The notes beneath the pieces are model-generated. The model was not told where the DNA came from. It searched no databases and was given only the letters and a program-made list of their open reading frames with translations. Shown here in pieces: positions 3,701-47,600 of a stretch of 64,000 nucleotides of DNA (positions are counted from its first letter, which is position 1; the number at the start of each line of letters is the position of its first letter). This DNA is from Klebsormidium nitens. Taxonomy: Eukaryota > Plantae > Klebsormidiophyceae. Location of the stretch: positions 1 to 64,000 of the forward strand of contig DF237103.1 in NCBI GenBank assembly GCA_000708835.1, in the 5' to 3' direction. The position numbers and the translations under genes were made by a program.

Positions 3701-5674
3701 TCCTGCGCTGTTCTTGCCCTATCTCCACCTTGAGGCGATTGCAGTAAGCCCGACCGGTTATTTAGAAGGAAGAGAGACTAAAGATCGTCTCTCCTGATTC
3801 ATCCAGAAATGGCCCATTGTACTGCTGAGCACATACTTCGGAAAAGAACAAAGTCACATATGTTGAGACTTTCTGAAGAGAAAATTAGTCACATGTGATA
3901 TGACCCAGAACAGCCGTTTCTCAAACATGTCCGATCCGCAGTGCAGACAAAGTGAGTTCGGATGCAGAAGGTGGGGAGAGAAACTCCCCTGCTTGCTGAC
4001 TCACCCAATGATCAACCTTTGTCTGCCGTATCTGTACCCCAATAGTGAGCTTCCGAAAGCGCGCGCGCGCGGCAGCAACTACGTCCTGAATTTCCAGAGT
4101 TGGATGCACTAGGAAGTGTGCTAGCGCATGGAAAATGTGCCCTGGGGTGAAGAGGGGCCGCAGCGAGGGGCCGTGGATTGGGCTGGCCAGCCATAGGTGG
4201 GCTGAAATGCAAAGGGCGAAGATTACATCGTTGGTTAATAATGACACCATGCTGACCAGTGGTGGGTTCAGTCCGTGATCCAAATCCTTCACTGAGTGGT
4301 AATCGCAGACAGGCTTCAGCCGTAGGTGGGCTAAAAGCAACGATCTGACTATTTCATCTTCTGGATTAGTCTGCTGCCAAGATCCTCCATATCTGTCAAT
4401 GTGGGACTGGCCAACCATAGGTGGGCTGAAAGCAAAGGGCAAAAAATATCCGACCTTTGGGGTATGCGCTGGTTATTCTTTGCATCATTTTGCGGCTGCG
4501 TTCCTCCATCACATTCCAATCCGAGACTGGCCAGCCATAGGTGGGCTGAGAGCAAAGGGCAAAGATCGGGTGACGGGGGCAATGCGCTGTTGATTCTTTG
4601 GATTGCCTTGTAACTAAGGGGAGCCACTGGCACAGGTTGTTGCTCCCCTTGGACTTGCTTCTGGAATCCGGACTGATTGATTGATACAGGATCACCACTT
4701 TCTTAAAACACAATATAAGATGTGTCTCAGAAGCTTACGACTTGGAAATCTACATACTGGCCACATTTCAAAACACCAATGTCAGACGGGGCCTCTCCTA
4801 TCAGAAGTTCACCACTTCAGTCTCAACAAGGTCTCGACTTTCTTAAAACCCCAACGCAAGCCGCCTTTCCTATCCACTCAGGTTTCCTGCAAGGTCCCCT
4901 CTTTTTGAATACTCCAATGGTAAGACGCTTCTCCTATCAGAAGCTCACCACTCACAAGTCTTACAGATTTGCCACATTCTCAAAACACTGGCACTCGACG
5001 CGTCTCCCAGCCGACTCACCTGACCAGTCGTACAAGCCGTCGCTCCAAACCCATTGCAACCCGTCCCACTTGGAAAGCCTCTCTCGGTGGTCCACCAAAA
5101 AGTTGATGTGACTTGCGTCGCCGGATTCAAACCTCTTTCCCTTCAGCGTCTCATTGACCGCAGGGTAATCCCTAACCAAGTTAGCAAAGTCCATCTCCAG
5201 GGGCTGGTCAAACATGCGCGACCATGAGATTTCGCAGTTCACTCCCCCGGCGCAGTCATTGTAATCAATCACAAGCGTCCGGTTTGAGAGGAGCGCAACC
5301 ATGAATGCGGTCACAATGCCGGGAATCTTGTTCCCGTGCCCTGTGTAATGGAACGGCTTGTACAGGAAGAACTTGTGCTCTCGGGGAGCCTCCAGGCTCG
5401 CACGGTGACGCGCCGCATACTCGTCCCAAGCTCTTTCCAGCTCCGGGCTTATATGCAACGTCTGTGACCGTCCTTGAGACCCCGTGACTCGGACCCCAAC
5501 GACCCCCCCATTGGCAGGCTCCTTTGCACACCCCCCCCAGAGTGGCCCCGTGACGATCTCGCTGTTGAGAAGGTTGAGCACCAACAGGGTGCACATTACG
5601 TACCAAGCGACGCTTGGCCGCCATGGCCCTAGCTTTGGGGAGGATGATCCCCCGGGCCCTCTTGTTGGGATCAT
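717..5674 (-). CDS. GT37 (xyloglucan/arabinogalactan-type alpha-1,2-) fucosyltransferase-like protein, 6 exons, ~442 aa
   Basis: Phase-consistent exons 5674-5020, 4201-4005, 3616-3563, 3153-3083, 2399-2214, 882-717 (1329 nt), all GT-AG. N-terminal TM segment (AWYVMCTLLVLNLL). GT37-like motifs: YKPFHYTGHGNKIPGIVTAFMVALLSNRTLVID, IFHALAHFLVHP..IGVQIR, VAELFLLSHTHQLIISRGSSFGSTAAALGGLYPWVI, AISDPCCSH (cf. plant FUT1 GLGNR..ALLTDRVLLVD, AEIYLLS..STFGYVAQGLGGLKPW, SMEPCFH). Confidence 0.85.
842..1360 (-). repeat. Decaying tandem array (~72-98 bp period) of the 3' splice site plus first ~40 nt of fucosyltransferase exon 6
   Basis: Unit like tgggtcattaccaaggacggttactacggg (minus strand) recurs at ~842, 940, 1020, 1099, 1176, 1254, 1332. 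AG acceptors precede first bases at 882 (functional), 980, 1061, 1140, 1217, 1289. Confidence 0.85.
1763..2164. repeat. Intronic ~57-bp direct repeat (1763-1820 and 2109-2164)
   Basis: acccgctccgcaccc...cccaccct...accaa-cctacccgtcccagt occurs twice in fucosyltransferase intron 5. Confidence 0.75.
2363..2616 (-). repeat. Three ~105-bp tandem copies of acceptor plus start of fucosyltransferase exon 5
   Basis: acggcatc(c/t)tctgg..catca....gcaatggagc at ~2363, 2468, 2573. Acceptors at 2399 (functional) and 2503 (intact AG); AG lost at ~2609. Confidence 0.85.
4180..4560 (-). repeat. Four copies of acceptor plus start of fucosyltransferase exon 2
   Basis: ctggcca(g/a)ccataggtgggctga..gcaaagggc at ~4183, 4405, 4527 and a degenerate copy at ~4313. 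AG acceptors before 4201 (functional), 4330, 4425, 4545. Confidence 0.85.
4700..5020 (-). repeat. Degenerate repeats at the donor end of fucosyltransferase intron 1
   Basis: ctcctatcagaag(c/t)tcaccact at ~4795 and ~4931, and gccacatt(t/c)(t)caaaacac at ~4760 and ~4971, resemble the first ~60 nt of the intron. Confidence 0.55.
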
Positions 5675-6859: not shown

Positions 6860-9800
6860 CTACATATCAGCAACGGACCACAAGTACGCCTCGTTCGCCC
6901 TCGCCTGCTTCGCATTGCTTGCTTTCACCAACTCCTTTTCGAACCCAGTGCTCCGATCCACCCCGTCCCAGTGCCGGCCAGGCCGGATGCCGAACCGGTT
7001 GTACGGCGGGGCTAACCCCCGCTTTAACCAGCTGTGGGGAGGGATGTCCTGGGGCACGATGAAGCCCTGCGCTTTTAGGTCGTCCATGTCTAGTTGGCCG
7101 ACAAGGTCCGCTTCAGACGGCCCTTTGTTCTTGACGAGATGCGCCATCGGGTCCCCCCACCGGGAGCGGCTCTTGAGCATGTTGTCGAGATCTTTGTCGT
7201 CCCTGTGTGAAGGAAGAAACGACGTCAACAAATTTGGTGGATGGCCTGAGTTGCAGTCAAATGCTATCCGAGTTCCAATCACGTTCTGTAATGAACCTGT
7301 AACTCCAATCCGGAGACCTAGGAAAAAAAAACATTGAAGTCTGAAATCTTCGACGCAGACTGTTAGGTAACAAAGATACAAAGGTGACATGCTGAAGGAC
7401 TGTGCGAGGTGGGGTCAAGCTAAACGCAGGGAGACTCGCCCAAATGATGAGGGGTGTGCTTCGAGAAAAGTCAATCCAGAGTACTGCAGCAAGATGTCAC
7501 ATTGCGAAGCCGGCTCGGGCCGCTCAAAAGAAGCGGACGCCCATTTTGTCGTCGATAAGACAAAGCTGTCGGCGAATTCGCGTCAAGCGCTTTGGTAACA
7601 AACCAGAACTGCCGAACGACGTTCTGGTTTGAAGAGCGTCAAAACTCCCCTTCGCCTGTCCAACCAAGACAGGACGCAGGCATCCAAGCGTGTGCTCTGT
7701 CATTTGAAAAACGTGCCTTCTGCCTAAATTCCTAGCGCAACAACCAACAACCAAGGCGATCCTCAACAAAAGCTTTCTCGTACCGGTGACAATGAAGACA
7801 CCTCACGGCCAGAGACAGCCAGCACTGAAACAAACAGCGCGCCACCTCTCTTTGTTCTGGTCGCGACGTTTTGTTTCAGCCCACTATCAAGCTCTCAAAG
7901 CGCATCCAGAGCAATCAATCAGCCAGAAACAAGCAGACAAAGGAACGGAACGAACTCCGGAGCAAGCTGCAGGATCGGTCCGTGAGAAGCGGTATCGCGG
8001 TCTTCAAAAGCCTTTGTCAAAACGGCCAGGCGAATTTATGCAACTAACGCAAACCTGTCTGGATTCAGAAGCAACTCAAACGAGCGGTGTAGGGGGCGCA
8101 CGTTTGTTTCAGATAAAACCTATCACAGTCTGCCTGGCAACTGGCCTGTGCTCTTTTTGGTACGTCGTTTGTCCAGGTATTGTGATACCGTCAACCGTGC
8201 CGAAGACAGCTACCATGCACCGTGCTCGAAACATTCTCGCGGTCTCAAACGATGCCAAGACATCTTCCAGTGTAACGCCCCAAAGGATCCAATTTTGGCA
8301 AGAGGTTGGAGAATCAGAAGCAACCGGAACCTGACGCCTTACCTCGTCCTTGCAAACGGCTTGTTCCGCATATCGTCCAGCTCCCGCGCCTTGTCCTCCG
8401 CCGCCCGTTTCTGCGCCATGCCCTTTCCCCACTCGGGCGGGGGCTCCTCCTTCCGTTTCTTCGCCTCGGCTTCCGCCTGCGCTTTCAGCTCTTCTGCGGT
8501 GACCCGCCGCCCCGTCTTGTCTCGGTACACCGTCCCCGCGCCGCGCCCCGTCACCGCCGCGTCGAGCGCCGAGAATTTCTTCGCGTCTTGCGCTCGTTTC
8601 GCCTCAATCTCTCTCTGCAGATCTTTCCCCGTCCGTAGCCCCGCAAGCGTTCCGTCCGTCATCCTCGCCGGTTTTTCGCCCCCTGAAGGATTGCTAGCGT
8701 TCCTTGGAGGAGGCCCCTCAGGGGAGTCGTGGCGCGCTTTCCGGCGCGGGGGAGACAGATCCGGAGAGTCATGGTGTCGCTTCCTAGGAGGCGAGAGGTC
8801 CTGCTGATGTGGTGAGGGGGCGTGCCGGGCTCTGCGCGGGGGCGAGAGGTCGGGAGAATCCTGCCGTCGTCTTCTTGGTGGGGACGAATCAGGCGAAGCT
8901 TGTCTGGCTTTTCTAGGGGGGGACAGATCTGGGGCGACATCACGCCTGCTCTTCCTAGGGGGCGACAGGTCTGGCGAATCATGCCTGGCTTTTCTAGGGG
9001 GCGATAGATCAGGTGACGCTGGTCTTCCTTTCCGGGGGGGTGATAGGTCTGGGGAGCCACGTCGCGCTTTTCTTGAGGGCGAAAGATCAGGCGAGTCATG
9101 CCTCGCCTTCCGAGGTGGTGACAAATCAGGTGCGTTTTGCCGTGCCCTTCTAGGAGGCGACAGATCAGGAGAATCATGCCGCGCTCTACTGGGGGGTGAC
9201 ACGTCGGGCGAGTCGTGTCGAGCAGTCCGAGGTGGCGACAAATCAGGCGAATCGTTCCGCCTCTTCCGAGGGGGGGAGATGTCGGGAGAGCCATTACGCG
9301 CCTCCAAGTCCCTTCTTGCAGAAGTGTCTGCTGTGCCAACCTCCGTCCAGTTGCTTCCCTGCTTGGCTTGCATCTCCCGCAGCATGTCGAGCCTCAGCTT
9401 CATGCGGGTGTCGGCGTCCGCGACCACTTCAGGCGCTTCCTCAACTTCTGCAACAAATTAACAGAGACACATGGTCAATTCTAATGACTGATTTGCAAGC
9501 AAAAACCTGAAAGACAGAGCGACACCACTGTATTGCTAAGGGCCTAAAAGCTGAGAGCAAAGTATGAACCAGCGGAAACCGCTGAATTCAGCTCGTAGAG
9601 CGGACATGAAACCATGGAAAGCATCGAAATGGAAAGAAGCTGCACCGAAAGTGTGCACCTGTAATTGTTCACAGGAAAGTGGAATACAATGCGACACTTC
9701 GAATTTGACAGCAAATATACGATCATAAAAGCAACTAACAGCTCCAAGAACTGGATGAGCCAGTTGCATCCAAGCAGCTTCAGAGAATCCAACGAAAGTG

Positions 9801-17200: not shown

Positions 17201-20200
17201 GGCAATTTCCATTCTAGTGTTCTCTTTTCAAGACAAGCTTGCAAAACACATGTTGCCTCCTGATCTATCATCTCAAGCGCAGAGGCCAGAAATGCTACAA
17301 CCTCGATTCTCGTGAGGCAGCTTAAGCGCAGAGGTCAATCCGATTATCGCAGATTCTGTGCTGCCCTTCCAGGCTCATCGTCTTTCAGAATCGTTTCGTC
17401 AAGCGCTTTTCAGTCTGATGTGTTTACATCCACTAAACAGGAGTTCCGAATGTGTTCCACGTTTCTCTCCAGATGCCCTGCTTGCCGAAGCGGAAGCGTA
17501 CCCTGCCGTTGTTGCGATCCACGCTGCGATGGGAGCAATACGAGTTGAACTACCTTCCAGAATCTTTTCGAGCGCTTTGCTTTTGACTCGGTTCTCTAAA
17601 AACCCCTCAAAATGAAGCACCGTGACTAAATTGGTTCCACGTTTCTCTCCAGATGCCCTGGTTGCCGAAGCGGAAGCAGACCCTGCCGTTGTGGCGATCC
17701 ACGCTGCGATGGGAGGCGGTACCGGGTTGAACTACTTCCAGAAGCGCTTCCCCAAGCGTTGCTTTGACGTCGGGATCGCGGAGCAGCACGCGGTCACATT
17801 TGCCGCGGGGCTGGCTACCGAGGGCCTTAAGCCCTTCTGCGCCATCTACTCGACGTTCCTGCAAAGGGGGTATGATCAGGTGAGGAATCGACTCTATCCT
17901 CTTTACCTACATCGTCTCTCGACTGCGAAAACAGTGGCTCACAGTGCAGGGATGGGTGCCGCAGAGGCCTTCACCGTGCTGCAGAAGGTACTCGATCTGC
18001 ACTTGCAAATTTGGGTTGTGGTACTTTGTTCGAGGTTGATTTGCCAGTGCGATAGCGACACCTCTGGACACACTCAATATTCTAAGCCCTTTGCAGCTCT
18101 TGAAGCCACTTCGAAATTTCGCCTTCCTAAAAGCCTCCTGTCTCCGTTTCCCATTTTTGCGGCTTTTCCGCTGCTGCTTACCCGTGTTGACTTCACATGT
18201 TGACAATCCCTTCGAGGGACAGAGCCTCCAATTCCCAGCGCCCTTTCCTCTTCTGTGAACCGTCCTCAGGCGTTTTCGGTAATCCGATGTTCTTCCCGTC
18301 CCTTTGCAGGTCTGCCACGACGTCTCGCTCCAGAAGTTGCCAGTCCGCTTTGCAATGGACAGGGCAGGCCTCGTGGGGGCCGATGGCCCGACGCACGCGG
18401 GCGCCTTTGACGTTACGTACATGTGAGCAGTCGATGTTCCTTCTTGCACAAAATCTTTCAGCTACCGTTTGGAATGCCATCGAGCTTCAAAAATAGTGGG
18501 TGAGAGTTTATCTACAGGTGCTCAGTGTTGAGTTTTCCAGTTTTGTTGAAGCGAGGAACCATCTTGTGTTAAGCACTGACGAATCCAGAGCTGACATGCC
18601 AGCCGTGTCGAGACCTCCTTGTACTAATTCATGTCCAGCGCCCGGTTCGTAACTTCTAACAAGGGGATATTGAGATACTCTTCAGAGCATTATAAGATTT
18701 TCCGCTGACCTCTCATTTTTCCGAGTGCAGGGCGACGCTGCCCCACATGATCGTCATGGCCCCCTCTGATGAAGCCGAACTTTTCCACATGGTAAGCAAG
18801 AGCCTTCCAAGGCCAACTTTCGTAGGACTTGTTTCAGATATCTGTTCCTTACTGTCTGAGGTACCTACTTTTCCTTCTGTTGCCTCAGAGGCCTTCTTTG
18901 GTTCCGACTCTTCTGCTGAAGCAGCCTCGATGTGCCCTTCCGACAGCAGGAGCTCCTTCTAATGATTCTATTTCCCAGCAGCAGCAGGGTCTTTTTGCCG
19001 ATCTCAACTGTATTTTTTAAAGGAGCAGCACCGGTTTCTGTTCTTTGTCTTTTATCTTATCCCGTCTCAACACACGTAACACACGTATCGTCGCTTAAAT
19101 CCATTCGTACAGGGTCCCTTTTGCGCGTAGACAAACCAACTCAACAAGCTAGGAGACAGATTCCCAGGTGGCTATGTTGCTGGGATTTGACGACCAGCCC
19201 AGCTGCTTCCAGTAGGACGTGAAGTCGTTGTAGACACGTAGACACGTATCCAGACCTTCACTTGTGTGAGAAAAGTCCGAGTTCTGTGACAAACTTGATC
19301 TCGACCACCCACACGTTTCCACGTTGTAGTCGATCCCAACAAAGACTAACTTTCACGAAGAGACATTGCTTCTTCACTTGAAATATTGCAGGTGGCCACT
19401 GCCGCTGCGATTGATGACCAGCCCAGTTGCTTCCAATCAAACACGATCTCGTCGTCTACTCGTAACCACACCTAAGCCACTCGAACAAATAATAAACCCA
19501 GTAAAAAACCCTTCCAGGTGGCCACTGCCGCCGCAATTGACGACCAGCCCAGTTGCTTCCGGTACCCCCGTGGGAACGGCATCGGCGTACCCCTCCCCGC
19601 CAACAACAAGGGCATGGTACTACCCATTGGGAAGGGGCGCATCCTGCGCGAGGGGACCGATGTTGCGTTCTTGGCGTACGGAACCATCGCCCAAAACTGC
19701 CTGGCGGCCTCTGACCTGCTGTCCGATAGTGGGGTATCTGCGACCGTGGCAGACGCAAGGTGAGACACGACGGGGGCCGCAGCTTACCTTTATCTATCTC
19801 AGTTTACGCTTCCTGGGCTTTTACGACAGTATTGGCAAGTCTGAACGTAGCGATGCTGACGCAAGGAACCATCGCCCAAAATTGGTTGGTGGCAGCAGAC
19901 CTGCTGTCCAAGAGCGGGGTGCCTGGCCCCTTGACGGTGGCAAACTGAGAGTTTGAGCTGTGAATGTATGGGATTGTTATTTCAAAATCCAGGCTTTTGT
20001 GTACATCCATGAGATTTGGACGTCGCGTTTGTGGCCCAACAATTGACCGCCCACAATCGTCCAATGGCCGCTGACCTACTTTTCAGACCTGGGTGTGTGT
20101 AGCATACCCGGGGTGAAGGTTTGGTATCCGCAAGGATTCGGGCAAAATTTCTTCGTTGTTTTGTGGCCTGAAAAGGATGCAGAGTCACCGCTGGCCTGTG

Positions 20201-21448
20201 TCGCCCGCTGGCCTGTGTCGCCCGCTGGCCTGTGTCGCCCTTACTGAGTGCCTCGTTCGTTAGCAAGAGGTGGACGGGGTGTGGACGCCAAGCAAAGGCT
20301 TTCTCGCCCTAGCATTCCTAGCTCACAAGGGCTAGGTAGCTACACTTCCGAGTGGAGGGATTGTCGACGGCGGATTCACTGCCCGTTTCCGTGCAGAGAA
20401 CAGTGGAAACGTGCAGAGAACAGTGAAGTTTCTCGCCCCGCATATCGAGTTCAGGAGCTGTGGGAAAACGGTGAAAGCCGGGACCATTGGAACATTTTGC
20501 TTCTTGTTCGCAGGTTTTGCAAGCCGCTCGACCGGAAGCTGAAGTCCTCAAACCCTTGGCAAATTTCAGAAGCAGATTTTGCCTTTCATCATTATTGACC
20601 TTTAGACGTCGAAAGGACGTTTCTGCATGCTATAACACAACGGCTCCTCCGCAGGTTCTGCAAGCCGCTCGACCAAGAGCTGATCCGGCGGCTGGCGCGC
20701 GAGCACCGTGTACTGATCACCGTTGAGGAGGGCTCCATCGGCGGCTTTGGGAGCCACGTCACCTTCTTCATGCAAATGGACGGACTGCTCGACTCGGGCA
20801 AACTGAAGGTGAGAGTTTTGGTCAAAGTTTTGGTCACCTTGGAATTTTACCCACCTTGCATGTTTTGCCCACCTCCCTTTACTGTTTCTTTGTCGATCTA
20901 TATGCTTCCTCTCTGCCGTATAGAACCTCACAATGCGGATTGCGCAAACGCGACTTTGGACAACAAAAAAGGTGGGGGCCTTGGCAATCAGGAGCCCTTC
21001 AACTCGATGGGGACAGTCACTGGCCACGTGTAATTGTGCTCTGTCTGAAAGGCTAGTTGAGATTGGTTCTGACTGCAAAGTATCTATCTGGAAGGAGCCT
21101 CAAACATGCTGACGAGAGTTCCTGGACCTTGATGGAGTTACGAATTAATTCGTTTATGTATGTCATTGAAGCGGCCAATGTCATTGGTATCAGGTCTCGA
21201 GCGAGAAACCCGGTTCTTTTTGTCAAGAAGTTTATGAAGATCTCAAGAAGTTTACGTATTGAATTTTCTTGCATCTCGTACAGATTCGTCAAATGATTCT
21301 GCCCGACATTTACATCGACCACGGATCCCCGGCCGCCCAGTTGGAACAAGCGGGACTGACGGCCGGCCAGATTGCGGGGACCGCGTTGAGGTTGTTGGGC
21401 AATGACCGGGAAGCTCTCGCTCTAGCCGGCAGGCAGATGTCGAAGTAG
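11259..21448 (+). CDS. DXS: 1-deoxy-D-xylulose-5-phosphate synthase, plastid-targeted, 15 exons, ~753 aa
   Basis: Exons 11259-11407, 12583-12673, 13417-13533, 14183-14347, 14784-14934, 15364-15431, 15744-15830, 16197-16549, 16876-16994, 17653-17879, 18310-18422, 18731-18791, 19518-19759, 20655-20808, 21284-21448 (2262 nt). Motifs [64 protein letters not shown] (ThDP binding), [31 protein letters not shown]. The first two (transit peptide) exons are less certain. Confidence 0.95.
12336..12458. repeat. Imperfect inverted repeat enclosing an AT-rich ~80-nt core in DXS intron 1 (MITE-like or hairpin)
   Basis: cacc-t-ggattca-ggcgggg (12336-12354) pairs with ccccgcc-gtgcg-tgaatcc-ggtg (12436-12458). 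No target-site duplication recognised. Confidence 0.4.
13732..13763. repeat. Perfect 32-bp palindrome with no spacer in DXS intron 3
   Basis: gtttctgtctgactgc|gcagtcagacagaaac: the 16-nt arms are exact reverse complements. Confidence 0.95.
14020..14044. repeat. (CTGCG)5 microsatellite
   Basis: Direct reading of the sequence. Confidence 0.9.
17454..17560 (+). repeat. Pseudo-exon: upstream duplicate (180-bp period) of acceptor plus 5' part of DXS exon 10
   Basis: gttccacgtttctctccag|atgccctg.. at 17454 and 17634, with ~4 mismatches in the first 62 exon-derived nt. Read-through from the upstream AG hits TGA at ~17613. Confidence 0.9.
19161..19950 (+). repeat. Junction duplicates on both sides of DXS exon 13
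   Basis: cag|gtggc..gacgaccagcccag.tgcttcc copies start at 19168, 19392 and 19518 (functional). A degenerate copy of the exon 3' part (ggaaccatcgcccaaaa..gacctgctgtcc..gacggtggca) lies at ~19865-19945. Confidence 0.85.
20188..20238. repeat. 17-bp unit x3 (ccgctggcctgtgtcgc)
   Basis: Three exact tandem copies in DXS intron 13. Confidence 0.9.
20501..20545 (+). repeat. Upstream duplicate of acceptor plus start of DXS exon 14
   Basis: cgcag|gttttgcaagccgctcgaccggaagctga at ~20514 versus cgcag|gttctgcaagccgctcgaccaagagctga at 20655. Confidence 0.85.
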
Positions 21449-35667: not shown

Positions 35668-38600
35668 TTACAATTCGGGGGTGATGTCTTTCTCCTTCAG
35701 GAACTCGGCTAGGTCCTTGCTGCTCTTGATCTCCTCGATGTCCTTCTTCAAGCCCTCCCTGCAAGAAAGCGCAACTTGCACTATTGGTATGAATCCACAA
35801 GCCTGAAAGGAACGCATCGCACACGCGATCGCTCTTGTAGCAGGGACATCTTTCTTGGGCCTATTGTTCTCTAGAACCCTAACCGAATGCTTATCAAGAT
35901 CCTGGAATCAGCACGTCTACTTTGGCAACTTGGAGGTGTGCGCATCGCTGTTTCGACGTTGTACATTCAAGCGGAGCAGATTGTGTTCGAGTCCGGATTT
36001 CTCATGAACTGGATATCCTCGTGCGCAAGCCTCGAAACGAGCCGTAAACAAGCTGCCAATGATCAGTCCTGCAAAGAACGCCACGCACAAGCACCGAAAA
36101 TGGCACAAGGGCTTCTAATCCGTGAAAAAGAATCCCAAACTTGCGCCTCAATAGACAATAGATATAAACAAACTACTTCTGCGCCAGGGGTCCTGAACTC
36201 CCCAGTTGCGAAATCTGTCAATGGTTTCTTGCGGTTGGAAATGTGAATGGATCCTACCAGCGTTCATCGTGACGTTTTGACACACGGGCGGGGAGGCGGA
36301 CTCACCGATTGCTGGCCCACAGCAGCGTGGAATAACTAAATGACGCCAGCGCAGCGAAGCCGACCGTCTCCAAAGCGCCGTCGACTGCAGGAACGAAAAC
36401 AAGATCGCTAACAGAGGTCTGCAGTAACGATGTGGGTTCTTTTGTCGAGTGTGCACCTGTTGGAAAGGAATTCCGTCTAGAACGGGAGTTCTGTGCGGAG
36501 GTTTTGAGGCGTCTCCGAAGGATGACACCCCCCTCATTCCTGGGCAGATTGTACTGTCAGTTTGAACGTTCCCTGGTTCTGGAACATTGACCAGATTCAT
36601 GTCGGTATCTTCTTTTTACTCATAGACGGTGAAGTACAGCTTGCATTTTCAGAGAGACGGCAGTGGGAATTGGATGCCAACAGCACTTTCTATTCGCTCC
36701 AGACCGATACTCGTATAGTAGTTATGGCAAGCGCCCTCTTGTTGAGCGAAAATTATGACGGCCCGGTATATTGCAAGAATTTACTTTCCAAGCGACCTAA
36801 GAGAACTGGATCGGGTCAAGAGAGATCTCGCGGTTTAGAAACGCGGACGTGAAAGCCAACAGTAAATCTGAAAGTATCAACTGCGAAGGCACGAGCTTAC
36901 GTCCAGTAGTAAACGCTCCAGCGGCCCCGACGCTCATGGCCACAGCGGGCAGCACGTTCTGGATCTTGGCGACGAGCTGCGCGCGCTCCTGCGGAAAGAG
37001 GACGGAATGGAAGTTGGAAAGCGGAACGGGGTCCCAGAGCGGAACGCAATCTCAGTACGTTTTGATAGATCTTATGCTCCAGAAATGTGCAAGTCTGCGG
37101 TTGGCTCAAAATATGGGGCATCTGACATCACAGGTCCGCAGCTCAGCGTTTCGCCTTCTGTCCACTAGCTGCCGAACCAAAGAGGAATGCGGAATTCCAG
37201 TACATCCTTAGCAGCTTCTTGATTTAGTGGACAGGACAATCCCGGAAACGTTCGGTGCGCCAGAATCCAAAGCACCTGACACACGCATGGTAAAAAAAAA
37301 TCGACAAGCAGGAGGAAAGGTCTCTGCTCCTGTCACACCCGTTGCGAGGGCGCTCTTACTCATCCACAGAGACCAGCTGAACGATCCAAAATCATGGGCA
37401 AAGGCCCGCCTCGATTCGAACGTCTTTGCATCGAAGAAACGCGTCCAAAGCTCCGCAAACAGGACATTGGAACCGATATTAAAGAGTTTTCACCTTATAT
37501 ATCGATATAGGATTTCTAGATAGGATGTAGGATAGGATCCCAGGATCGAACCGATATACAGAAATCCTATCTATCCTAGGATTGTACCGACATCGATTTA
37601 GAAACCCTATACCCTATTCTTATTTATAGATTTAAGGAAATAGAAGCGATATCGACATAGAATCGATATCGATAGACTTCTCACCTTTTTCGGCTTGGGC
37701 AGGGGCAGGTCCTCCACCAGGATCTTTCGCAGGATGTCCTGCGCCTCCTTGAGGTCGCTCCGACGCTTCGCATCGTCATCTGCAACACACAATGCGACGC
37801 TCAGAACCAAAGAGTTGCAGGAGAAACATGCGCGCCATGCCTGTAAATTACATCGAGACTCTACATTTTTGTTCGTTAGACAAAGGAGAGTCCCTTCTGA
37901 TTCTATAGAAGCTGCGCGAAGTGAAAATCGTTCTAAAGGCTGTATCAACGGAGAGAGAACCTAGATCTGCAGAGGTTGACGCAAGTTGCTGACGCAGACT
38001 CTTGTGTGCCCTCTGCTACCTGTTACCGTACTTCAGCAATGTGAAGCAACTAGGGATAGCTTGATCTCCTATCCTGCTTGAAGCAGACCAGAGAGAAGTC
38101 GTCAAACGCCATCTTGAAACGGGGAGCCTTTCAAACAAGCGGATTCTACTCAAGCACGTACAAACAAGCGGAATAAACGCCCAGGGAACGACTTCTTTGG
38201 CGGGGATTAAGAACCGCAAGTTCATGAAAAGTAGTCCTGAATATTTGTCATTGATATTGACCCGGCCCCGAGCCACAGTTGTATCGACGCCAATGTGAAG
38301 CCAAACCTGCTCATAGCATTAGGATTACATGGAGGAACATGGGATTTCCTAACTCGTGCACAACGAGATAACTGAGTTCAAGTTCCATGTTAACAAGCTC
38401 TCAGATAGCTCATACATGACTGAGTAAGCAGTCACCAGTTTCCGCAGTCTTGGTCGCCTCGCTCACGGCCGGCGGCGCTGCCGAGCTCTTGAAAACCGGC
38501 AGCGGCGGCGTCGGTCTGGCCACCGAAAGAGGCGCCCTCTCGCTCACAACCGGAGGCAGAGGCGTCTCCCTAACCACTGGAAGCGTAACCTGCTCCTCAG

Positions 38601-41600
38601 CAACCGCGGGGACCGAGGCGCCAGGCGGTTGGTCGTTCTTGCCCCTGAACCAGCTGAAAGGTCGTCCGCTTTTAGCATCGCCTTCGGGCGGCTTTGCGGA
38701 CTCTGCCGGGGTCGTCGGAGTCTGAGAGTTGACGTCAGAGGCTTTGCCCCCGGTTTGCTGGCCCAGGCCGCTGCCAATGGAACCGGTCGGGGTTTGGGAG
38801 AGAACCCCCGAGGACTGAGTCGTTGCTGGGGAAGGGTTAACCGACGAGGGTTTGGCGTTAACCGAACCAGTCGCGGAGGACGTCGGGGTTCGACTGGTGA
38901 CGTCAACGCTCCCAGAAGCAGCAGGGATGGCCGGCGTGTCGGACCCGTCGAGCGGCTTGGTCGGTGTCTGGGAAAGGACGCCAGCGTTACCTCCGCCCCG
39001 TATCCAGGGAAGGGCATTGAAGAAGTTGTTATTATCGCTGGGGTTTGGGGTTGCGGCGGGCTTCGAGGTTTCCACGGGCTTCGATGCTTGCACCGGTTTT
39101 GTCGCCTGCGCCGCATTTGGCGCTTGCGCGGCAGCGTTCGCGACCGGTTTCGTGGGGGTCTTGCTGATGGCGTCAGACCCGCCCGCCTTTGCGGTCAGCA
39201 TCTGCGGGGATCCCCCCAGCGGCTGCGCCGGGGTTTTGGAGACGGCGTCACTCTTGGTGCTGCTCGCGGCGAGCATCTTGGCGCCGGGGCCGTCCTGGGG
39301 GGTGGTGGGAGTGCTGGAGATGACGTCAGCAGATGCGCTGGAGCCGTTTCTCTGCCAATGGAGGAGATAATGTTGGTTCGATGCATTAGGACGAGCAGAG
39401 AGCGGAACTTCATTCAAGCTTTTATGAGACGACAACTGCTCATTTCTAACATGAGCTTTTTGTAATCTGTACCGTTTCTGGGAGCTCTACCCACGTCCTT
39501 CGAATCTGTTTGACCCGAATACGTGCGCAGCTTTCCACATCTTAAAGGTGCTCAGCCATCCTGCTTTGATGCAGAAACTTGGGGATGTCGAGGCTCAAAG
39601 GATTCGACGGAGCTTCAAGCAAAAACGGCAAAACGTTTACCATTTCCATTACAAATACATCCTCCGTAAACACACCGGGACCTCATTGTCGGAATACGTA
39701 TTCCAGAAGGAACGTTTGAGATTGCACATGTAAGGAAGACTGACACGCTTACCTCGCGGCTGGCAGCCACACTCTTCTTGCTCGCTTGCATGACGCTGGA
39801 GAGCTCAGACATCAGACTCGCCACATCATCACTTCCCCGTGAGGGCCCCCTCCCCGACGCCTGATCCGCCCGGGGCTTCTCTCCCTGCTTCAGAAGCTTG
39901 GACAGCCCCTCAATCTCAGACGAAAGCTCGCCCGAGCCCCTCCCAAAGTTCGGCGACTTCTGTGCCCCTGACAGGACAGAGTCGGCAGAGTTCACTTGGA
40001 GCGGCGTCTTGGGCGCCGTAACGCTCGCGCCGTTCTCTGGCTTCTGCGTTACGCCCCTCAGGACTGCATCCGCAGAGTTTGCTTTCAGGGGGGAGACGCT
40101 GCCGGCTGCTGGCTTCGACCCTGCTGCCCCCTGTTCCGTCTCGCTCGGGTTGCCCACCGACTCCGTGACCAAGCTCTCCAGTTTCTTAGGGTCGGCACCC
40201 TCGACACCGCTTGCGACTGTCTCCTGCTTCTTGGGCCACTGCCATCCCCCCCCGGTACTCGGCGCCGGAGTCTCGTTCTTCTCAGGAAGAGGTTTTGCGC
40301 TCAGTTTGGCTTTAGGATCGCCCACAGCGCTCTTGACAAGCTGCTCGTTCCCCTTAGTCGGGGCACCCTTAACCCCGCTGATAACCGTCTTGCTGACCCC
40401 GGCCTTGAGGCTGTCCCCCGAGCCACTGCGCCCGGAGCTCCCGTCCTCCCGCGCCCCCCCGTTTGCAGGCTGCGTTTTGACCCCCCCAGAAGACTTCAGG
40501 CTGTCCCCTGTGCCATTCCGCCCGGTGCTCCCTTCCACCCGCTTCTCCGCCTCCTTGACCAGGCCCTTGATCGTCTTCTTCCCCGCGTCTGGTTCTTCCT
40601 TGGCCTCCTTCTTGACCTGCGCAAACTTGTCGTCTGCCCGCTTCACGTTCTCCACTCTCTTCCGCAGGTCCGCCAGCGACTCCTGCGCCCTCTTCTTGGC
40701 CTCGTCATTCGCATCCGTTGCTACGCTCCCCGCCTGCCTCACTTTGTAACTCGCGTCCGCCCTCGCGCTCTTCAGCGCCGAGTACTGCCCCCCGCTCTTC
40801 GCCACGCCGCTGGGCCCTGTCCCCGGCGGACTGTTCCCGTACGCACTGTTCACCGCCCCAGTCTGCGGCGCCTTCTTCCTGAAAAGGGCCCACAGGAGCG
40901 CGAGAACCAGCAGGACAGCCGCGGCGAATGCGGTGAACCTCTGAGGAGAGCCGCCGACACTCGGGGGCAGGGCCTTCCGCACACTGGTCACGACTCTGCG
41001 GGGAGCGGATTCGGTGGACGCCGCGGCGTCGGCTTTCATCTGGAGGCGCGCCGCGCGGGAGATGCTGATGGGGTCGATGTCGACACGGGGATCCACCCAC
41101 TCGACCTCGGAGAGCCATAATTCCATCTCCTCGGGCTCGAGGATGCCGACGGGGCCTGAATAGATGCAGCGTGCAGGTTAGGCATTTGAAGTTCTTGACA
41201 TCAGACCAAGAAGTAGGTCCGCAGAGTTTGTAGTTAGGAGTGTCAGGCGCTTGACATTCATCCTTTGTTGCTGACCAATGTAGCACTTGAAGCCCACTGA
41301 GAACCTGTGACATTTGCAGCGCCTGACAGTAGGGCGTGCAAGTAGTGTACCCGCAAAACACTACAGCCAGAGTCAATAAACAGCACCTTGATGGTTTTAA
41401 GCTAGCAATACAGAAGCCCTTGTGACAGATATCATCGTGGACTCCATGCATAGTGAAACGTAAACGGAAGCCACAGTAGACCAGGAACGCTCAAGCAGAC
41501 CCGTAACTATTTGATACCTCAACCATTGTTGAACGCTTCATGAAGCCGATTTGATAACGTGGCCCGTCCATACCCCTTGAAGCCCGGCAGTCATTCACAA

Positions 41601-43178
41601 CAATTCATCGGAGAGTCCAGCTTGTGCGACAGGGCCAGCAAGCGCAGACCTGTGCAGACCCCTCAACGCACCTATGCCAAAGGAAACTCCTGCTACTATC
41701 TTGTCAAATCGTGTAGTGACAAAGACATCTTACCCTGTTCATGAGAGGGGGAGTGCTTACCCGCTTCGGTTATCAGGCCCTCCGATGCAGTTGGAGGCGG
41801 CAGGCCCGCCCGCCTTGCCACAACGGACACAGTTGCAAAGGGGGGGGTGCTCTCTTGGAACCCATGGCCGGTCCTCTCAAGAAGGATGTGACCGTTAGGG
41901 GAGAAGCGCTGCACTGCCTGGAAGCGCACACTCTCCTGCAGAATCCATAGTAAGGGCTGGCTGAGGCAAGACAAATACTTCCTGGTTTGCAAAGCCTACC
42001 TTTTGCTGAAACATCTACCACATGAAATGAATGGTATTGTTGTATGGTGGACGAAGGCACTTGCCTAGCCCGTCGCCCTCGAAAATTCATTAGGCTGCTT
42101 TGCGTGGTAACAACTTGCTCAACTCGAATGAGTGCAGCTAACTTGAAGAATGAGGACAGATTTTCACACAGTTTGTGGTGTCCTTTGGCAAATGTGGCTT
42201 TTCCTGGCCAACAAAAAGAGCTCTAACTTGAAGGACTGAGGTAAAGCAAGGATTAAGGTGTGACTTTCCGTCTACTTAATGTTGGTAATTCATCCGGAAC
42301 ACCGTCAACAAGGTGAAACCTGTGCCTAACCCTTTTTGCATTATGGAATGCACCAGCAGTGAATCTGCACGAATCTACTGCCAAAGGAAACAAGGGGCAT
42401 CTATCATTTGTGGGGTTCCTCAAAGACCGCATGGACATCATGTCTTCTTCCAGTACAGCCATCTAAGATGGATTCAAGGGATTGAAGCAGAAATAACAGT
42501 TCTACCATAAGCATTTGGTGTTATCGCATGCAAAATATCAAGCGTAGTTGGCTACTATGGTGGAATGCAGAGACTGAATGCTTTAGAAGGAAGATAGTGT
42601 TTTCGTCAAGCATTGGAACACCAGTTGAAATAACAAAGTCTTCCCGCATACCATTCCATGAGCTGCCAGCTATCTTACCAATGCCTACAGATTGTAAGCA
42701 CGTTAAGGTCCGGAATATCGCAGTGAACGCTGTCCCGTACAACCATATGTCAAGTTTTGTCCCCTCGCTAAAGAGCAGGAGGCACTTAAAGGTCTGAGTT
42801 GACAGACTGTCAGCATTGCTGTAGCAGTTCCTGTGCATCCAGGATGCACTCATATATGCACTGGAGATGAGGTTGGAAGCACCTAACTCGGTGCATGCGG
42901 CATTTGATTAATCAGACCCTCAGCCGCTTTTGTCAGGCCAGCCACCTTACCCGAGATTCCCGTGCATTGACCTGAATGCTGCCAGAAGCACGTCTCTGGC
43001 CGAACCTGGTTCTGCTGTTCACTCCTGACAGGTAAGACTTGCGTCTTGGAAGTCCCAAGTCATATGAGACAGAGAATGTTGCGTCATTGCTTTGTGACAA
43101 AGAGGACTGCGTTGCACGGATGGAATGGCAGCAAGATACGCTGGGAGTCTTGGACACGGCTCCGATTGCTGCCGCCAT
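35668..43178 (-). CDS. Large plastid-targeted, low-complexity protein with one internal TM segment and a C-terminal CURT1/CAAD-like domain, ~1,020 aa, 8 exons (minimum model)
   Basis: Phase-consistent exons 43178-42951, 41935-41761, 41155-39753, 39351-38436, 37779-37685, 36988-36901, 36384-36306, 35758-35668 (3075 nt). S/T/R-rich N-terminus MAAAIGAVSKTPSVS..; TM FTAFAAAVLLVLALLWALF. C-terminal LDGALETVGFAALASFSYSTLLWASNREGLKKDIEEIK matches the CURT1 pattern LPKVMELVGLGYTGWFVYRYLLFKSSRKELAEDIESLK. Extra small exons in intron 1 cannot be excluded. Confidence 0.75.
37495..37680. repeat. AT-rich GATA/TATC palindromic tract in an intron
   Basis: tatatcgatata (~37497), ataggatttct...agaaatcctat inverted pair (~37505/37560), atcgatatcgat (~37663). 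Confidence 0.55.
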
Positions 43179-44641: not shown

Positions 44642-47600
44642 ATGGAGCTCTTCTCAGAAGGCCAGGATGCAAGGCTGGCAAGCGACAACATCGTGGTGGC
44701 GGTGCGGGTGCGACCACTTTCCCAGGACGAGATCTTGCAGGGCGAGACGAATACAGTGCGCGTGGGGGAGGATGGCCGGGCCATGTCTGTGGTCGAACCG
44801 GGGCTTGGGGGGCACAACATGATCAGGAACTTTCAGGTGCGCTTTTACCACAGCTGAAGAAGTTCAAGGGCAGCGGTTTGCCCCGAAGGCGTTGATACAA
44901 GGGGTACAAGAGGACCTGCCCTTCGGACGGTTGGTGTTCCGTCCGTAGTAATTAGTGCTTGAACAGTACAGAGCTCGCAAAAGACTGACATTAAAGGGTG
45001 AATCATACCGTCCTTGTATTTCAAGTAGAGGTACTGGATAAACATGCCGCACCTGGGGCCAGATCCCATCCTTCCACTTACTGTCTTCGGCAGCCACACC
45101 TTTTTAAGACAGCAGCCACTTTGACCTAAGCCGGAAATCTATCATTGAAAGCACCAATTCTAGATGTGGGTCGATCCCAAAGTGAGATTCCAATTATACT
45201 CTGTACAGTGACTGAGTAATTCTAGCACGTCGATCACACCTGGTGCCCCACTAGCTGGAGCAGAGGTGTGCATGCGTGTATCTGGCTCGCAGCTTGAGGG
45301 TGAGACCCTAGCGGTTTCCCGTTTGCGCAGACTTTTATTATAAGACGCCACCACTACCTTCCAACATCAATCGTTTCTTCTTTCCTTGCTCTACCTCTTC
45401 AGTTCAACGCTTGTCTGGGGCCGGGCGCACGCCAGCAGGACGTGTTCCAGCAGTGCGGTGTGAGAAGGCTCCTCGACTCCGCGCTTCAGGGCTACAACTG
45501 CACCATTTTTGCATACGGCCAGACGGGGAGCGGCAAGTCGTATACAATGTCTGGCAAGGAGGAGGTACGCTTCTCTACTGTTCCTGCTTTTTTGTTTCGC
45601 TTTAAGTGGTGGCAATAATGAGGTCCAGTTGGGTGTCTATAATCGAGCATTCTGGGTAAAAAGGGCTCTAGCACGTGGTGAATAGCGTGGGGGATCGAAC
45701 TTAAGGCAACACTGTGTTCCAGAAGCATTTGACCCTGATTTGAAAACCCTTGTGTGCGGCGCAAGATTGCGCGCATGTGCCCCAGTGGCGTTGAGCCCAC
45801 TGCTCCTTCGGTTGTACGTGTGGCAGGTCATTGGGTGTCTCTGGCGGGACACATGTTTCGCGTTTGAGACGACACTTACAAAGTACGTGCAGCGGCGCAG
45901 TCGAAACTGACAATCTTCTTGTTTGGAGAAAGAAGCAAGCGATTCGAATCCCTCACGGCTCATTTACGCGAGGAAGTGCAGCCCAACATCAATAACTGGA
46001 AATTCTTGTGCGGAATGAATAAGTAGGGGGGTAAACCGAAGCCAATCGTTCGCTTGCACCCTTCCCCCCCCAGGTGGTAGAGCGCATCAGCTACGATGGG
46101 CACGAGGAAGATGGCCTCATTTCCCGCTCCATGAACTACCTCTTCGATTGTTTGGACGGCTTTCGGGCGTCCGGCCAAAAGGGCTTCCTCATGAAGGCCT
46201 CCTATCTGGAGATCTACAACGAGCAGGTGAGCGACTGCCACGTGGCATCTGTTGACATAAAGACACCGATTGCGTGAGTCCCTGACTCACTTTCGCAACC
46301 AGGATACCTTGAACTCTGCATTCTGACCGCTCCTGTCAGCTTAAAACGAAGCGGGACTTTCAAAGTGCAACGTTCGCATTTCAGTACGATAAAGGAAAAA
46401 AGCCGCAGATTTCATCGCTTTCCTTCCCACGGAGTAAGGCAAGCGTCAACCCGAATAAGTCTCATTGCGGTTCACCTGCTTCACGTTTCTGATATGGACC
46501 CGCTACCCAGTGGAAGGATCTGTTGTGGACTACTTCGAACACCAAGTGATAGATGGAATGTAGCTTTGCTTGGATCACCAAACTGGCCACGTCCAAGTCT
46601 CCTGAACTTCATCGACGTTCGTTTTCTCAAGAGCCAAATTCGAAAGTAGGGACTGTGAGTTCAAAACTGCTGCTGCAGACTGCTACAGACTGCTGACTGC
46701 TGACTCTGCTCATGACGCACGACTGCAGTCAGGAAACTGCTGGAGGAATGCCGTTTGCCTGACGGGTCTGGAGCCGTCAAGTGCCGTGCCGTCCCAATTC
46801 TAGCACAGGGCAGAAAAAGAACTCACAATCGTCATGCGTAAGGGTCGAGTGCCCAGTACATTGCACCAGTAACCAATCACGGCCTACACTTTTCAAGGAG
46901 GGTTATCCTGACTCTGATTCTTGACTATCCAGGTGAACGATCTAGTGCGAAAGGGCCCCGAGCAGGGGTGGAGGTCAAGTGAGAAATCCCCACAGAAGGT
47001 TTCACCGCAGTTGTGTTGGGAGCGTCATATTCTGAACACTTTGTTCGGCACAGTGGAATGATCAGTTGCGGGAGGGCCCCGAACAGCGGGTGTAGGTCAA
47101 ATGGCAAGAACGCTCCCCGAAAGATCATAGCAGGTGGATCTTTTCACGAAGATTCGTATTTGGCACAGGTGAATGATCTGTTGCGGGAGGGCCCCGAACA
47201 GCGCGTGGAGGTCAAGTGGAGCGACCGGGAGGGGTTCTACGCGGAGGGCCTGCTCATCGTGGACTGCGAGACGCGGGATGACGTGTGCTCCGTCATGTCG
47301 GAGGGGGCGCGCAACCGCAAGGTGGGTTAACCTGTCGGAAGGCAGGTTCGTTGAGTTATAATCGTGTGGTTGGCTGACTTGCTGTCGCAAAGAAATTCAG
47401 GCCGACCGGGACGGGTAAGTTTAAACTATCTTCCAGTTGGTCGAGGCCCCGCGCCCTCGAAAACTTGCAACTCCCCAGCTCGTCCAGTGGACGCCTTGAC
47501 CGGTGTCTTCGTCTCCTTCGTTCACGATCTTCAAAGTTCCTGAAGCCCTCAATACTTCAATTCTCTTTTGAGCAGATGGCTTCTTTATTAGGCGAAACAG

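Follow-up and report, generated by a model that had tools for sequence, protein, structure and literature searches.

KFL_001540060 of Klebsormidium nitens encodes a long, probably CAAD-like member of an unnamed streptophyte protein family

A single gene of eight exons

We analyzed a 64,000-nt stretch of the Klebsormidium nitens genome (contig DF237103.1, positions 1 to 64,000; hereafter the window), whose minus strand carries, from 43178 to 35668, the gene KFL_001540060 with 8 exons and a protein product of 1,024 aa (P0005). When P0005 was aligned to the minus strand, it matched residue for residue in 8 blocks, and the exons add up to 3,075 nt—i.e., 1,024 codons plus the stop. Reading the junctions directly, we found every intron to be of the GT...AG type, with phases consistent throughout. 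The gene is a pre-existing annotation, deposited as a "hypothetical protein," and a phase-consistent eight-exon model of ~1,020 aa, put forward earlier from the letters of this DNA (the original prediction), proved to be identical to it. We reached the database entry by a word search with the larger of two very large open stretches on the minus strand, followed by a search seeded by one relative fragment. These two stretches, which are accompanied by several short ones, have a G+C content of 59-66%, as against ~45-52% in the DNA between. Whole-protein analyses used the entry P0005, whose sequence equals that of the spliced product, while the genomic pieces were searched exon by exon.

Four independent lines of evidence show that the region 35668-43178 (minus strand) is one gene. 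First, the last four exons are incomplete on their own. Exons 5-8 encode 117 residues whose sole Met lies inside the first hydrophobic helix, and there is no ATG in the open frame upstream of exon 5; lacking both a start codon and a presequence, these exons cannot stand alone as a CURT1-type gene. The second and third lines come from metagenomes of the Joint Genome Institute (JGI). Two genomic loci of a Klebsormidium-type organism (L001 and L002, ~45% identity in exon 3) carry exons colinear with those of K. nitens, alike in order and orientation, and a 1,592-bp contig from another JGI sample (L005) aligns with the genomic DNA of L002 in six blocks of 97-100% identity, the introns being absent. 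In L005 one frame stays open from the last part of exon 3, across exons 4-8, up to the stop codon; the contig represents the orthologue in spliced, RNA-derived form. Over the C-terminal 118 aa it shares 67% identity with P0005, and its splice junctions interrupt the protein where those of K. nitens do (TTG/LDGALE vs. TGG/VDGALE and WASNR/EGL vs. WANSR/EEL, L005 given first and the slash marking the junction). Fourth, Trinity transcripts of the fern Pteridium, of Psilotum and of Netrium show the same layout in one open reading frame (ORF). At the other end of the gene, conservation begins 9 codons upstream of the internal Met145; Met145 is therefore not the start, and exon 3 must be preceded by others, so that the exons for the N-terminus are part of the gene.

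The alternative that the CAAD-like exons (37779-35668) are a small CURT1-type gene of their own, joined by mistake to another gene upstream, could draw on the introns of 400-1,000 nt that separate the exons and on the failure of our scans for a K. nitens transcript among metagenome contigs, where patterns for the exon 4/5 (exact) and exon 7/8 (degenerate) junctions gave 0 matches; set against the in-frame joining of exons 3 to 8 in L005, the missing start codon and presequence, the consistent phases, the GT-AG splice sites and the single-ORF transcripts, it is exceedingly improbable, and we regard the two-gene model as largely refuted.

Compared with L001 and L002, conservation is strongest in the C-terminal exons (61-82% identity vs. 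44-46% in exon 3 and none detectable in exon 4; Table 1). No counterpart of exon 4 was matched in these two loci at E<1e-3, though the motif type persists there, and an upstream ORF of L001 (8872-9114) has a PPFA..SV stretch resembling exon 2. The acceptor of exon 7 was suspected of being misplaced, since conservation with L001/L002 begins 7 codons upstream of it. This was ruled out: the extra stretch is a polypyrimidine tract plus AG, and the cDNA-like contig L005 shares the junction.

A streptophyte family and its C-terminal module

The distribution of relatives rests on a single-sequence HMMER search (phmmer) with P0005 as query against 1.84 billion protein representatives. Besides Klebsormidium-type fragments, this search yielded at least 17 cluster representatives of 340-784 aa, in each of which the last ~85 residues match P0005 940-1023 (phmmer E 2.6e-10 to 9e-4). 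They come from the liverworts Calypogeia and Marchantia (Mp7g08280); the moss Physcomitrium (LOC112279723), together with a moss-like sequence from ENA/Logan; the lycophytes Selaginella (SELMODRAFT_441980) and Diphasiastrum; the ferns Pteridium and Psilotum, together with fern-like Logan transcripts; the zygnematophytes Netrium and Spirogloea; and, among angiosperms, the magnoliid Aristolochia. All are entered as "hypothetical" or "uncharacterized," and one Physcomitrium isoform has been named automatically as a "CAAD domain-containing protein."

Beyond the shared C-terminus, 17 of the 18 aligned members (16 of the 17 relatives of P0005) have a transmembrane (TM) helix with a Kyte-Doolittle hydropathy (KD) of 2.0-2.8, followed in nearly all by a basic cluster, and a long variable spacer is common to all aligned relatives. 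A presequence is likewise common to the family. A short, acidic N-terminal module with the motif EWV...DPxV[ED][ILV]DP is found in the alignment except in three LysM-bearing members and in Aristolochia. P0005 carries the C-terminal module, the EWV/DP motif, the TM helix followed by RKK and a spacer of 714 aa; judged by its sequence, KFL_001540060 belongs to an unnamed and uncharacterised streptophyte family, in which no longer protein is known. The original prediction had held the layout to be without a described counterpart. In fact, at least 17 relatives share it, from zygnematophytes to ferns and Aristolochia, all of them uncharacterised. A search of a library of papers for the family's gene identifiers returned nothing except Mp7g08280, listed as "Unannotated" in an expression table. 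The C-terminal module would be the conserved working part, and the spacer a lineage-specific one.

In the three LysM-bearing members (P0009 of Netrium, P0017 of Spirogloea, and P0015), an above-threshold LysM domain lies N-terminal to the first TM helix (TM1) and replaces the EWV module, a hint that these proteins may touch peptidoglycan. Neither P0005 nor any of its exons matched LysM (PF01476), even at E<=10. We also considered whether the EWV module might be a degenerate LysM, which was ruled out by an hhalign probability of 0.1% against the LysM-bearing N-termini.

Some vascular plants depart from the common architecture. The Diphasiastrum isoform P0018 has no clear TM1 (best KD 0.99); further entries were recorded for Diphasiastrum (P0029-P0031) and for Aristolochia (P0032, P0048), and the Aristolochia proteins are short (363-369 aa) and devoid of the EWV motif. 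The family architecture thus seems to be eroding in some vascular plants. When angiosperm relatives were sought by a word search from the Aristolochia member, only Aristolochia itself was returned.

The C-terminal module occupies the last ~85 aa of P0005 and comprises two Gly/Ala-rich hydrophobic helices joined by G-L-D-G, plus a charged helix. The hydrophobic stretches lie at 951-969 (KD 1.52) and 972-990 (KD 1.22), and an AlphaFold2 model places the C-terminal helix at 1008-1017, the mean predicted local distance difference test score (pLDDT) of 10-residue blocks reaching 88-91 over residues 1001-1020. Nine columns of the family alignment are invariant in this module: P953, G960, G968, G977, A980, A992, R995, L998 and L1015. 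It is preceded in K. nitens by an amphipathic helix (908-930 in the AlphaFold2 model), and residues 914-931 have a hydrophobic moment of 0.45, at about the 95th percentile of P0005. An amphipathic helix N-terminal to the hairpin region is a feature of CURT1, and P0005 appears from the model to have one as well.

We examined the relation of this module to the CAAD family of Pfam (PF14159), for which the gathering score is 30.7 bits. P0005 scored 17.8 bits (E 0.003) over residues 970-1007, corresponding to profile positions 44-81 of 85, and when ten stop-free pieces were scanned exon by exon, Pfam returned no more than a weak match to CAAD, on exon 7 (E 0.018, 15.3 bits). Across the family, PF14159 was the top or only Pfam match in 13 of 18 aligned members and in all 10 of the further proteins scanned, the best being that of Selaginella (E 4.5e-6, 26.9 bits, profile 22-81). 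The matches always covered profile ~43-81—i.e., the second helix and what follows—across very divergent members. Searches against NCBIfam and PDB sequences returned nothing useful. Such consistent yet sub-threshold matches suggest remote homology, not formal membership, and we take the C-terminal module to be CAAD-like, probably a remote homologue and no proven member of PF14159.

Three observations weigh against this assignment and against a membrane hairpin. No member reached the gathering score (range 14.3-26.9 bits); the C-terminal helices of K. nitens are marginal in hydropathy; and AlphaFold2 draws one continuous helix and no hairpin, both in P0005 (938-1003) and in the orthologous fragment P0006 (85-149). 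They could be explained if the module formed one long helix, hydrophobic in part, that lies peripherally or serves in oligomerisation, and if its Pfam CAAD matches were compositional. We consider this unlikely, since the matches keep the same profile register across divergent members with a best E of 4.5e-6, the corresponding helices of other members are more hydrophobic (KD 1.6-2.15), and the AlphaFold2 models are of low confidence (mean pLDDT 46.6 for P0005 and 54.6 for P0006, from shallow alignments of 18-21 sequences). Furthermore, a conserved G-x-[DN]-G with invariant glycines between two hydrophobic stretches of ~20 residues is typical of a turn and makes one likelier than a continuous helix, and a hydrophobic helix of 43 residues would overshoot one bilayer. 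The CAAD-like C-terminus of the original prediction has thus narrowly stood, inasmuch as the PF14159 match is present; that match lies below the gathering score, and in place of the predicted hairpin AlphaFold2 gave a continuous, low-confidence helix. Should the module not be a membrane hairpin, the finding would shrink to another uncharacterised disordered plastid protein.

N-terminal anchor and disordered spacer

The first 50 aa of P0005 contain 28% S+T, 10% R+K and only 4% D+E, a composition that makes the presequence (residues 1-76) look like a transit peptide and agrees with the plastid-type N-terminus proposed earlier. Further downstream, EVEWVDPRVDIDP at residues 150-162 aligns with the EWV...DPxVE[IV]DPVT motif of the liverwort, moss, lycophyte and fern members. 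TM1 is the only strongly hydrophobic segment of the protein and is drawn as a helix (206-227) by AlphaFold2; the original prediction had placed it near residues ~190-210. It is followed by a charged helical region in which the one short charged helix of that prediction became two in the model (259-278 and 285-320), with mean pLDDT of 70-88 in 10-residue blocks and a high hydrophobic moment. This region gave a weak DUF2205 coiled-coil match (E 0.038) and is kept in the Klebsormidium-type relatives P0001-P0004.

From there on, P0005 is predicted to be largely disordered. In the AlphaFold2 model, pLDDT was below 50 for 776 of the 1,024 residues, with no secondary structure over 321-907, and the disordered stretch is rich in S/G/A/K/P/T, with 16% hydrophobic residues. 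Measured from the end of TM1 to the C-terminal module, the spacer has 714 aa and a net charge of +22; the disorder expected of the linker is therefore borne out by model and composition, while its length falls short of the ~750 aa originally given. S-x-T-P occurs 8 times in the K. nitens spacer, compared with 0.7 expected, a count reached by none of 2,000 shuffles. The usual form of this motif is [DG]-x-[VIL]-S-x-T-P-x-x-P, with 8-9 copies of [VIL]-S-x-T-P. Trp-centred motifs are present as predicted, at W439/W441, W718 and W836; they are kept, with one extra copy, in the close relatives L003 and L004, and are not conserved in more distant Klebsormidium-type orthologues.

Between relatives, the spacer varies freely. 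A unit of ~47 aa (…SKTV.SGVKGAP.K.NEQLVKS.VG.P…) occurs about three times in P0003 (L001 10001-12088), about twice in P0004 (L002 10001-11752), and as one copy plus a degenerate copy in exon 3 of K. nitens; judged from these sequences, the repeat number is changing quickly between close relatives. Over the family, spacer length ranges from 184 to 714 aa. Net charge spans +22 to -71, with K. nitens at the upper end, Spirogloea close to it at +19 and a fern at the lower end. The short motifs, too, are specific to lineages: EGPWFGQ in ferns, APGWSLNFGQ (twice) in Spirogloea, and in mosses TPFF cores in VTPFF[PA][SD][DE]-type repeats, 12 of them in the moss-like P0012 and 5 in Physcomitrium (P0024). 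A single related PFFPSTD was seen in Spirogloea.

Table 1. Positions of the gene, its parts and other features in the window (TRF, Tandem Repeats Finder)
Feature	Position	Strand	Residues of P0005	Description	Identity in relatives
Exon 1	42951..43178	-	1-76	ATG at 43178-43176, donor GTAAGG directly after; S/R/A-rich, almost acid-free, transit-peptide-like presequence	66% in close relative L003
Exon 2	41761..41935	-	77-135	Phase-1 end; acceptor CAG, donor GTAAGC; weakly conserved N-terminal region	
Exon 3	39753..41155	-	135-602	N-terminal motif, TM1, charged helices, first half of disordered spacer	79% in L003; 44-46% in L001/L002
Exon 4	38436..39351	-	603-907	A/P/S/T-rich disordered spacer, [DG]-x-[VIL]-S-x-T-P repeats, W718, W836	~50% with indels in L003/L004
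Exon 5	37685..37779	-	908-939	Amphipathic helix, then LPLPKPKK	61% in L001/L002; conserved in L001-L003
Exon 6	36901..36988	-	940-969	First Gly/Ala-rich hydrophobic helix of C-terminal module	65-70% in L001/L002
Exon 7	36306..36384	-	969-995	G-x-D-G turn motif, second hydrophobic helix, core of Pfam CAAD match	73-82% in L001/L002
Exon 8	35668..35758	-	995-1024 + stop	Charged C-terminal helix	69% in L001
Large open stretch	39618-41177	-			
Large open stretch	38413-39486	-			
Family N-terminal module	41016..41126	-	145-181	Contains EVEWVDPRVDIDP; AlphaFold2 helix 163-181, pLDDT about 70	
TM1	40881..40937	-	208-226	Followed by RKK; KD 2.57 over 19 residues	
Charged helical region	40599..40784	-	259-320	AlphaFold2 helices 259-278, 285-320	
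Antisense ORF	38629-39465	+		Opposite exons 3/4	
Antisense ORF	39898-40749	+		Opposite exons 3/4	
Antisense ORF	39996-41120	+		Opposite exons 3/4	
Tandem repeat	37640-37672			17-bp unit x1.9, intron just downstream of exon 5 (TRF score 59)	
Kinesin motor-domain exons	46074-47327	+		PF00225, E 1e-6 and 3e-4	
Bud13 splicing-factor exon	8342-9427	-		E 2.7e-11	
Transketolase pyrimidine-binding domain exon	17622-18200	+		E 5e-23	
Xyloglucan fucosyltransferase-like	4964-5674	-		Weak match, E 2.7e-4, below threshold	

Possible roles in the plastid and neighbouring genes

Taking these parts together, we give a slightly better than even chance to a plastid membrane protein that is anchored twice and whose motif-bearing spacer serves in the stroma as a flexible tether or scaffold. 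A long flexible linker with a membrane anchor on either side, as proposed in the original prediction, is a fair reading of TM1, spacer and CAAD-like C-terminus. The presequence would direct the protein to the plastid, where the CAAD/CURT1-like module would insert into a membrane as a helical hairpin. Both termini of CURT1 are stromal, and this topology, combined with the basic cluster after TM1, would make the spacer stromal and leave the N-terminal module across the membrane, in the lumen or in the intermembrane space of the envelope. Held at both ends, the protein might lie within one membrane or bridge two (thylakoid to thylakoid, or envelope to thylakoid), and its CURT1-like end would occupy curved membrane. 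As a flexible tether, the spacer would present short motifs in multivalent form, and in K. nitens the [VIL]-S-x-T-P copies and the three Trp motifs may recruit partners or be phosphorylated.

Among the factors known to shape thylakoid margins, CURT1/CurT proteins (PF14159) are the principal ones, and to our knowledge they have been studied only as small proteins. The K. nitens protein resembles them in the amphipathic helix, the two adjacent hydrophobic helices and the charged helix of its C-terminal part, as well as in its photosynthetic lineage, its plastid-type presequence and the rank of CAAD as top Pfam match across the family. It differs in size, since CURT1/CurT proteins have roughly 100-200 aa and are essentially the domain only, whereas the 1,024 aa of the K. 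nitens protein include an extra N-terminal TM anchor and a disordered spacer of ~700 aa. Its inter-helix loop (G-x-D-G) is also shorter, and the family scores fall under the gathering score, mostly over profile ~43-81 only. A CAAD-type module likewise serves as membrane anchor on a much larger polypeptide in certain cyanobacterial aminoacyl-tRNA synthetases; in K. nitens, by contrast, the fused part has no enzyme domain recognized by Pfam, is disordered and has its own TM helix, and the module stands at the C-terminus of a eukaryotic protein encoded in the nucleus.

The locus would thus represent a conserved long form, kept from streptophyte algae to ferns, in which a freely evolving disordered tether connects a CURT1-like module with a second anchor and, in some lineages, with a LysM domain that binds peptidoglycan. 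The usual angiosperm models appear to lack the family, and this would account for its having gone undescribed. Its members in Marchantia (Mp7g08280) and Physcomitrium (LOC112279723) make it directly testable, and it may offer insight into how the thylakoids of peptidoglycan-walled plastids attach to one another or to the envelope.

A more specific, unlikely proposal is that TM1 spans the inner envelope and exposes the N-terminal module to the intermembrane space, where the plastids of non-seed plants retain a layer of peptidoglycan, while the stromal spacer and the CURT1-like hairpin reach thylakoid tips or the stromal division machinery, the family having faded in seed plants along with plastid peptidoglycan. 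The above-threshold LysM domains of Netrium, Spirogloea and P0015, which lie N-terminal to TM1, speak for it, and the basic cluster after TM1 would keep the N-terminal module out of the stroma. Streptophyte algae, bryophytes, lycophytes and ferns, the groups in which members turned up, also fit the range of plastid peptidoglycan, described in PMC9434261 as "from glaucophyte algae to ... pteridophyte ferns." A similar phyletic range holds for plastid DipM, a LysM/LytM peptidoglycan hydrolase of streptophyte algae including Klebsormidium, of mosses and of lycophytes (PMC4015805), and a recent link has been drawn between CurT/CURT1 and the division of cells and chloroplasts (PMC12462475). DipM is, like our family, nuclear-encoded, and shares with three of its members the LysM domain; the family has no LytM or other enzyme domain, however, K. 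nitens has no LysM, and the remaining architecture is entirely different. Against the proposal stand the K. nitens and embryophyte members, all without LysM, and the lack of similarity between the EWV module and the LysM-bearing N-termini by hhalign. The family is, moreover, retained in the angiosperm Aristolochia, a lumenal N-terminus would fit equally well, and the distribution comes from one single-sequence search.

Its full form would make the family a physical link between the peptidoglycan-bearing envelope and the thylakoid/division system, kept by the plastids of non-seed plants, with LysM (in zygnematophytes) or the EWV/DPxVEIDP motif in the intermembrane space, TM1 in the inner envelope, a disordered tether in the stroma and the CURT1-like hairpin in curved thylakoid tips. 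We hold this joint reading to be improbable. If true, it would make the family a eukaryotic counterpart of the CurT-dependent thylakoid convergence zones of cyanobacteria, largely lost in seed plants and hence never met in Arabidopsis.

A tether to the pyrenoid is less probable again. On this view, the Trp-centred or S-x-T-P motifs would let the K. nitens protein fasten the thylakoids that cross the pyrenoid to its Rubisco matrix, in the manner of Chlamydomonas RBMP1/RBMP2, and the idea could call on the pyrenoid that Klebsormidium possesses, on a spacer that is the longest of the family, basic and provided with repeated short motifs, and on the retention of the Trp motifs in L003 and L004. 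The likeness to RBMP1/RBMP2 is one of architecture only (membrane anchoring plus a disordered region with short repeated motifs), without relation in sequence. The Rubisco-binding motif of Chlamydomonas is [D/N]W[R/K]xx[L/I/V/A]; it is absent from P0005, where none of the 8 Trp residues is followed by R or K. The loss of the Trp motifs in more distant Klebsormidium-type orthologues adds to this, and the idea is weakened because most members of the family come from embryophytes that have no pyrenoid. We therefore judge this part of the original prediction to be a poor fit and very improbable. The doubly anchored plastid protein remains the reading that we favor.

The surroundings of the gene hold several further features (Table 1). 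Kinesin motor-domain exons lie head to head with KFL_001540060, and a kinesin neighbour was also found in L001, L002 and L003, so that synteny is conserved. Elsewhere in the window are exons for a Bud13 splicing factor and a transketolase pyrimidine-binding domain, and a weak xyloglucan fucosyltransferase-like match. Three antisense ORFs (278-374 aa) opposite exons 3/4 look like by-products of a coding sequence that is G+C-rich (about 65%) and of low complexity, not like genes; a short tandem repeat lies in the intron after exon 5. In L002, a PIF/Harbinger-type transposase ORF (20435-21442, minus strand; Plant_tran, DDE_Tnp_4) and a Myb_DNA-bind_4 ORF sit between the gene and a DnaJ/CSL zinc-ribbon neighbour; neither is in L001, which looks like a recent insertion in L002.

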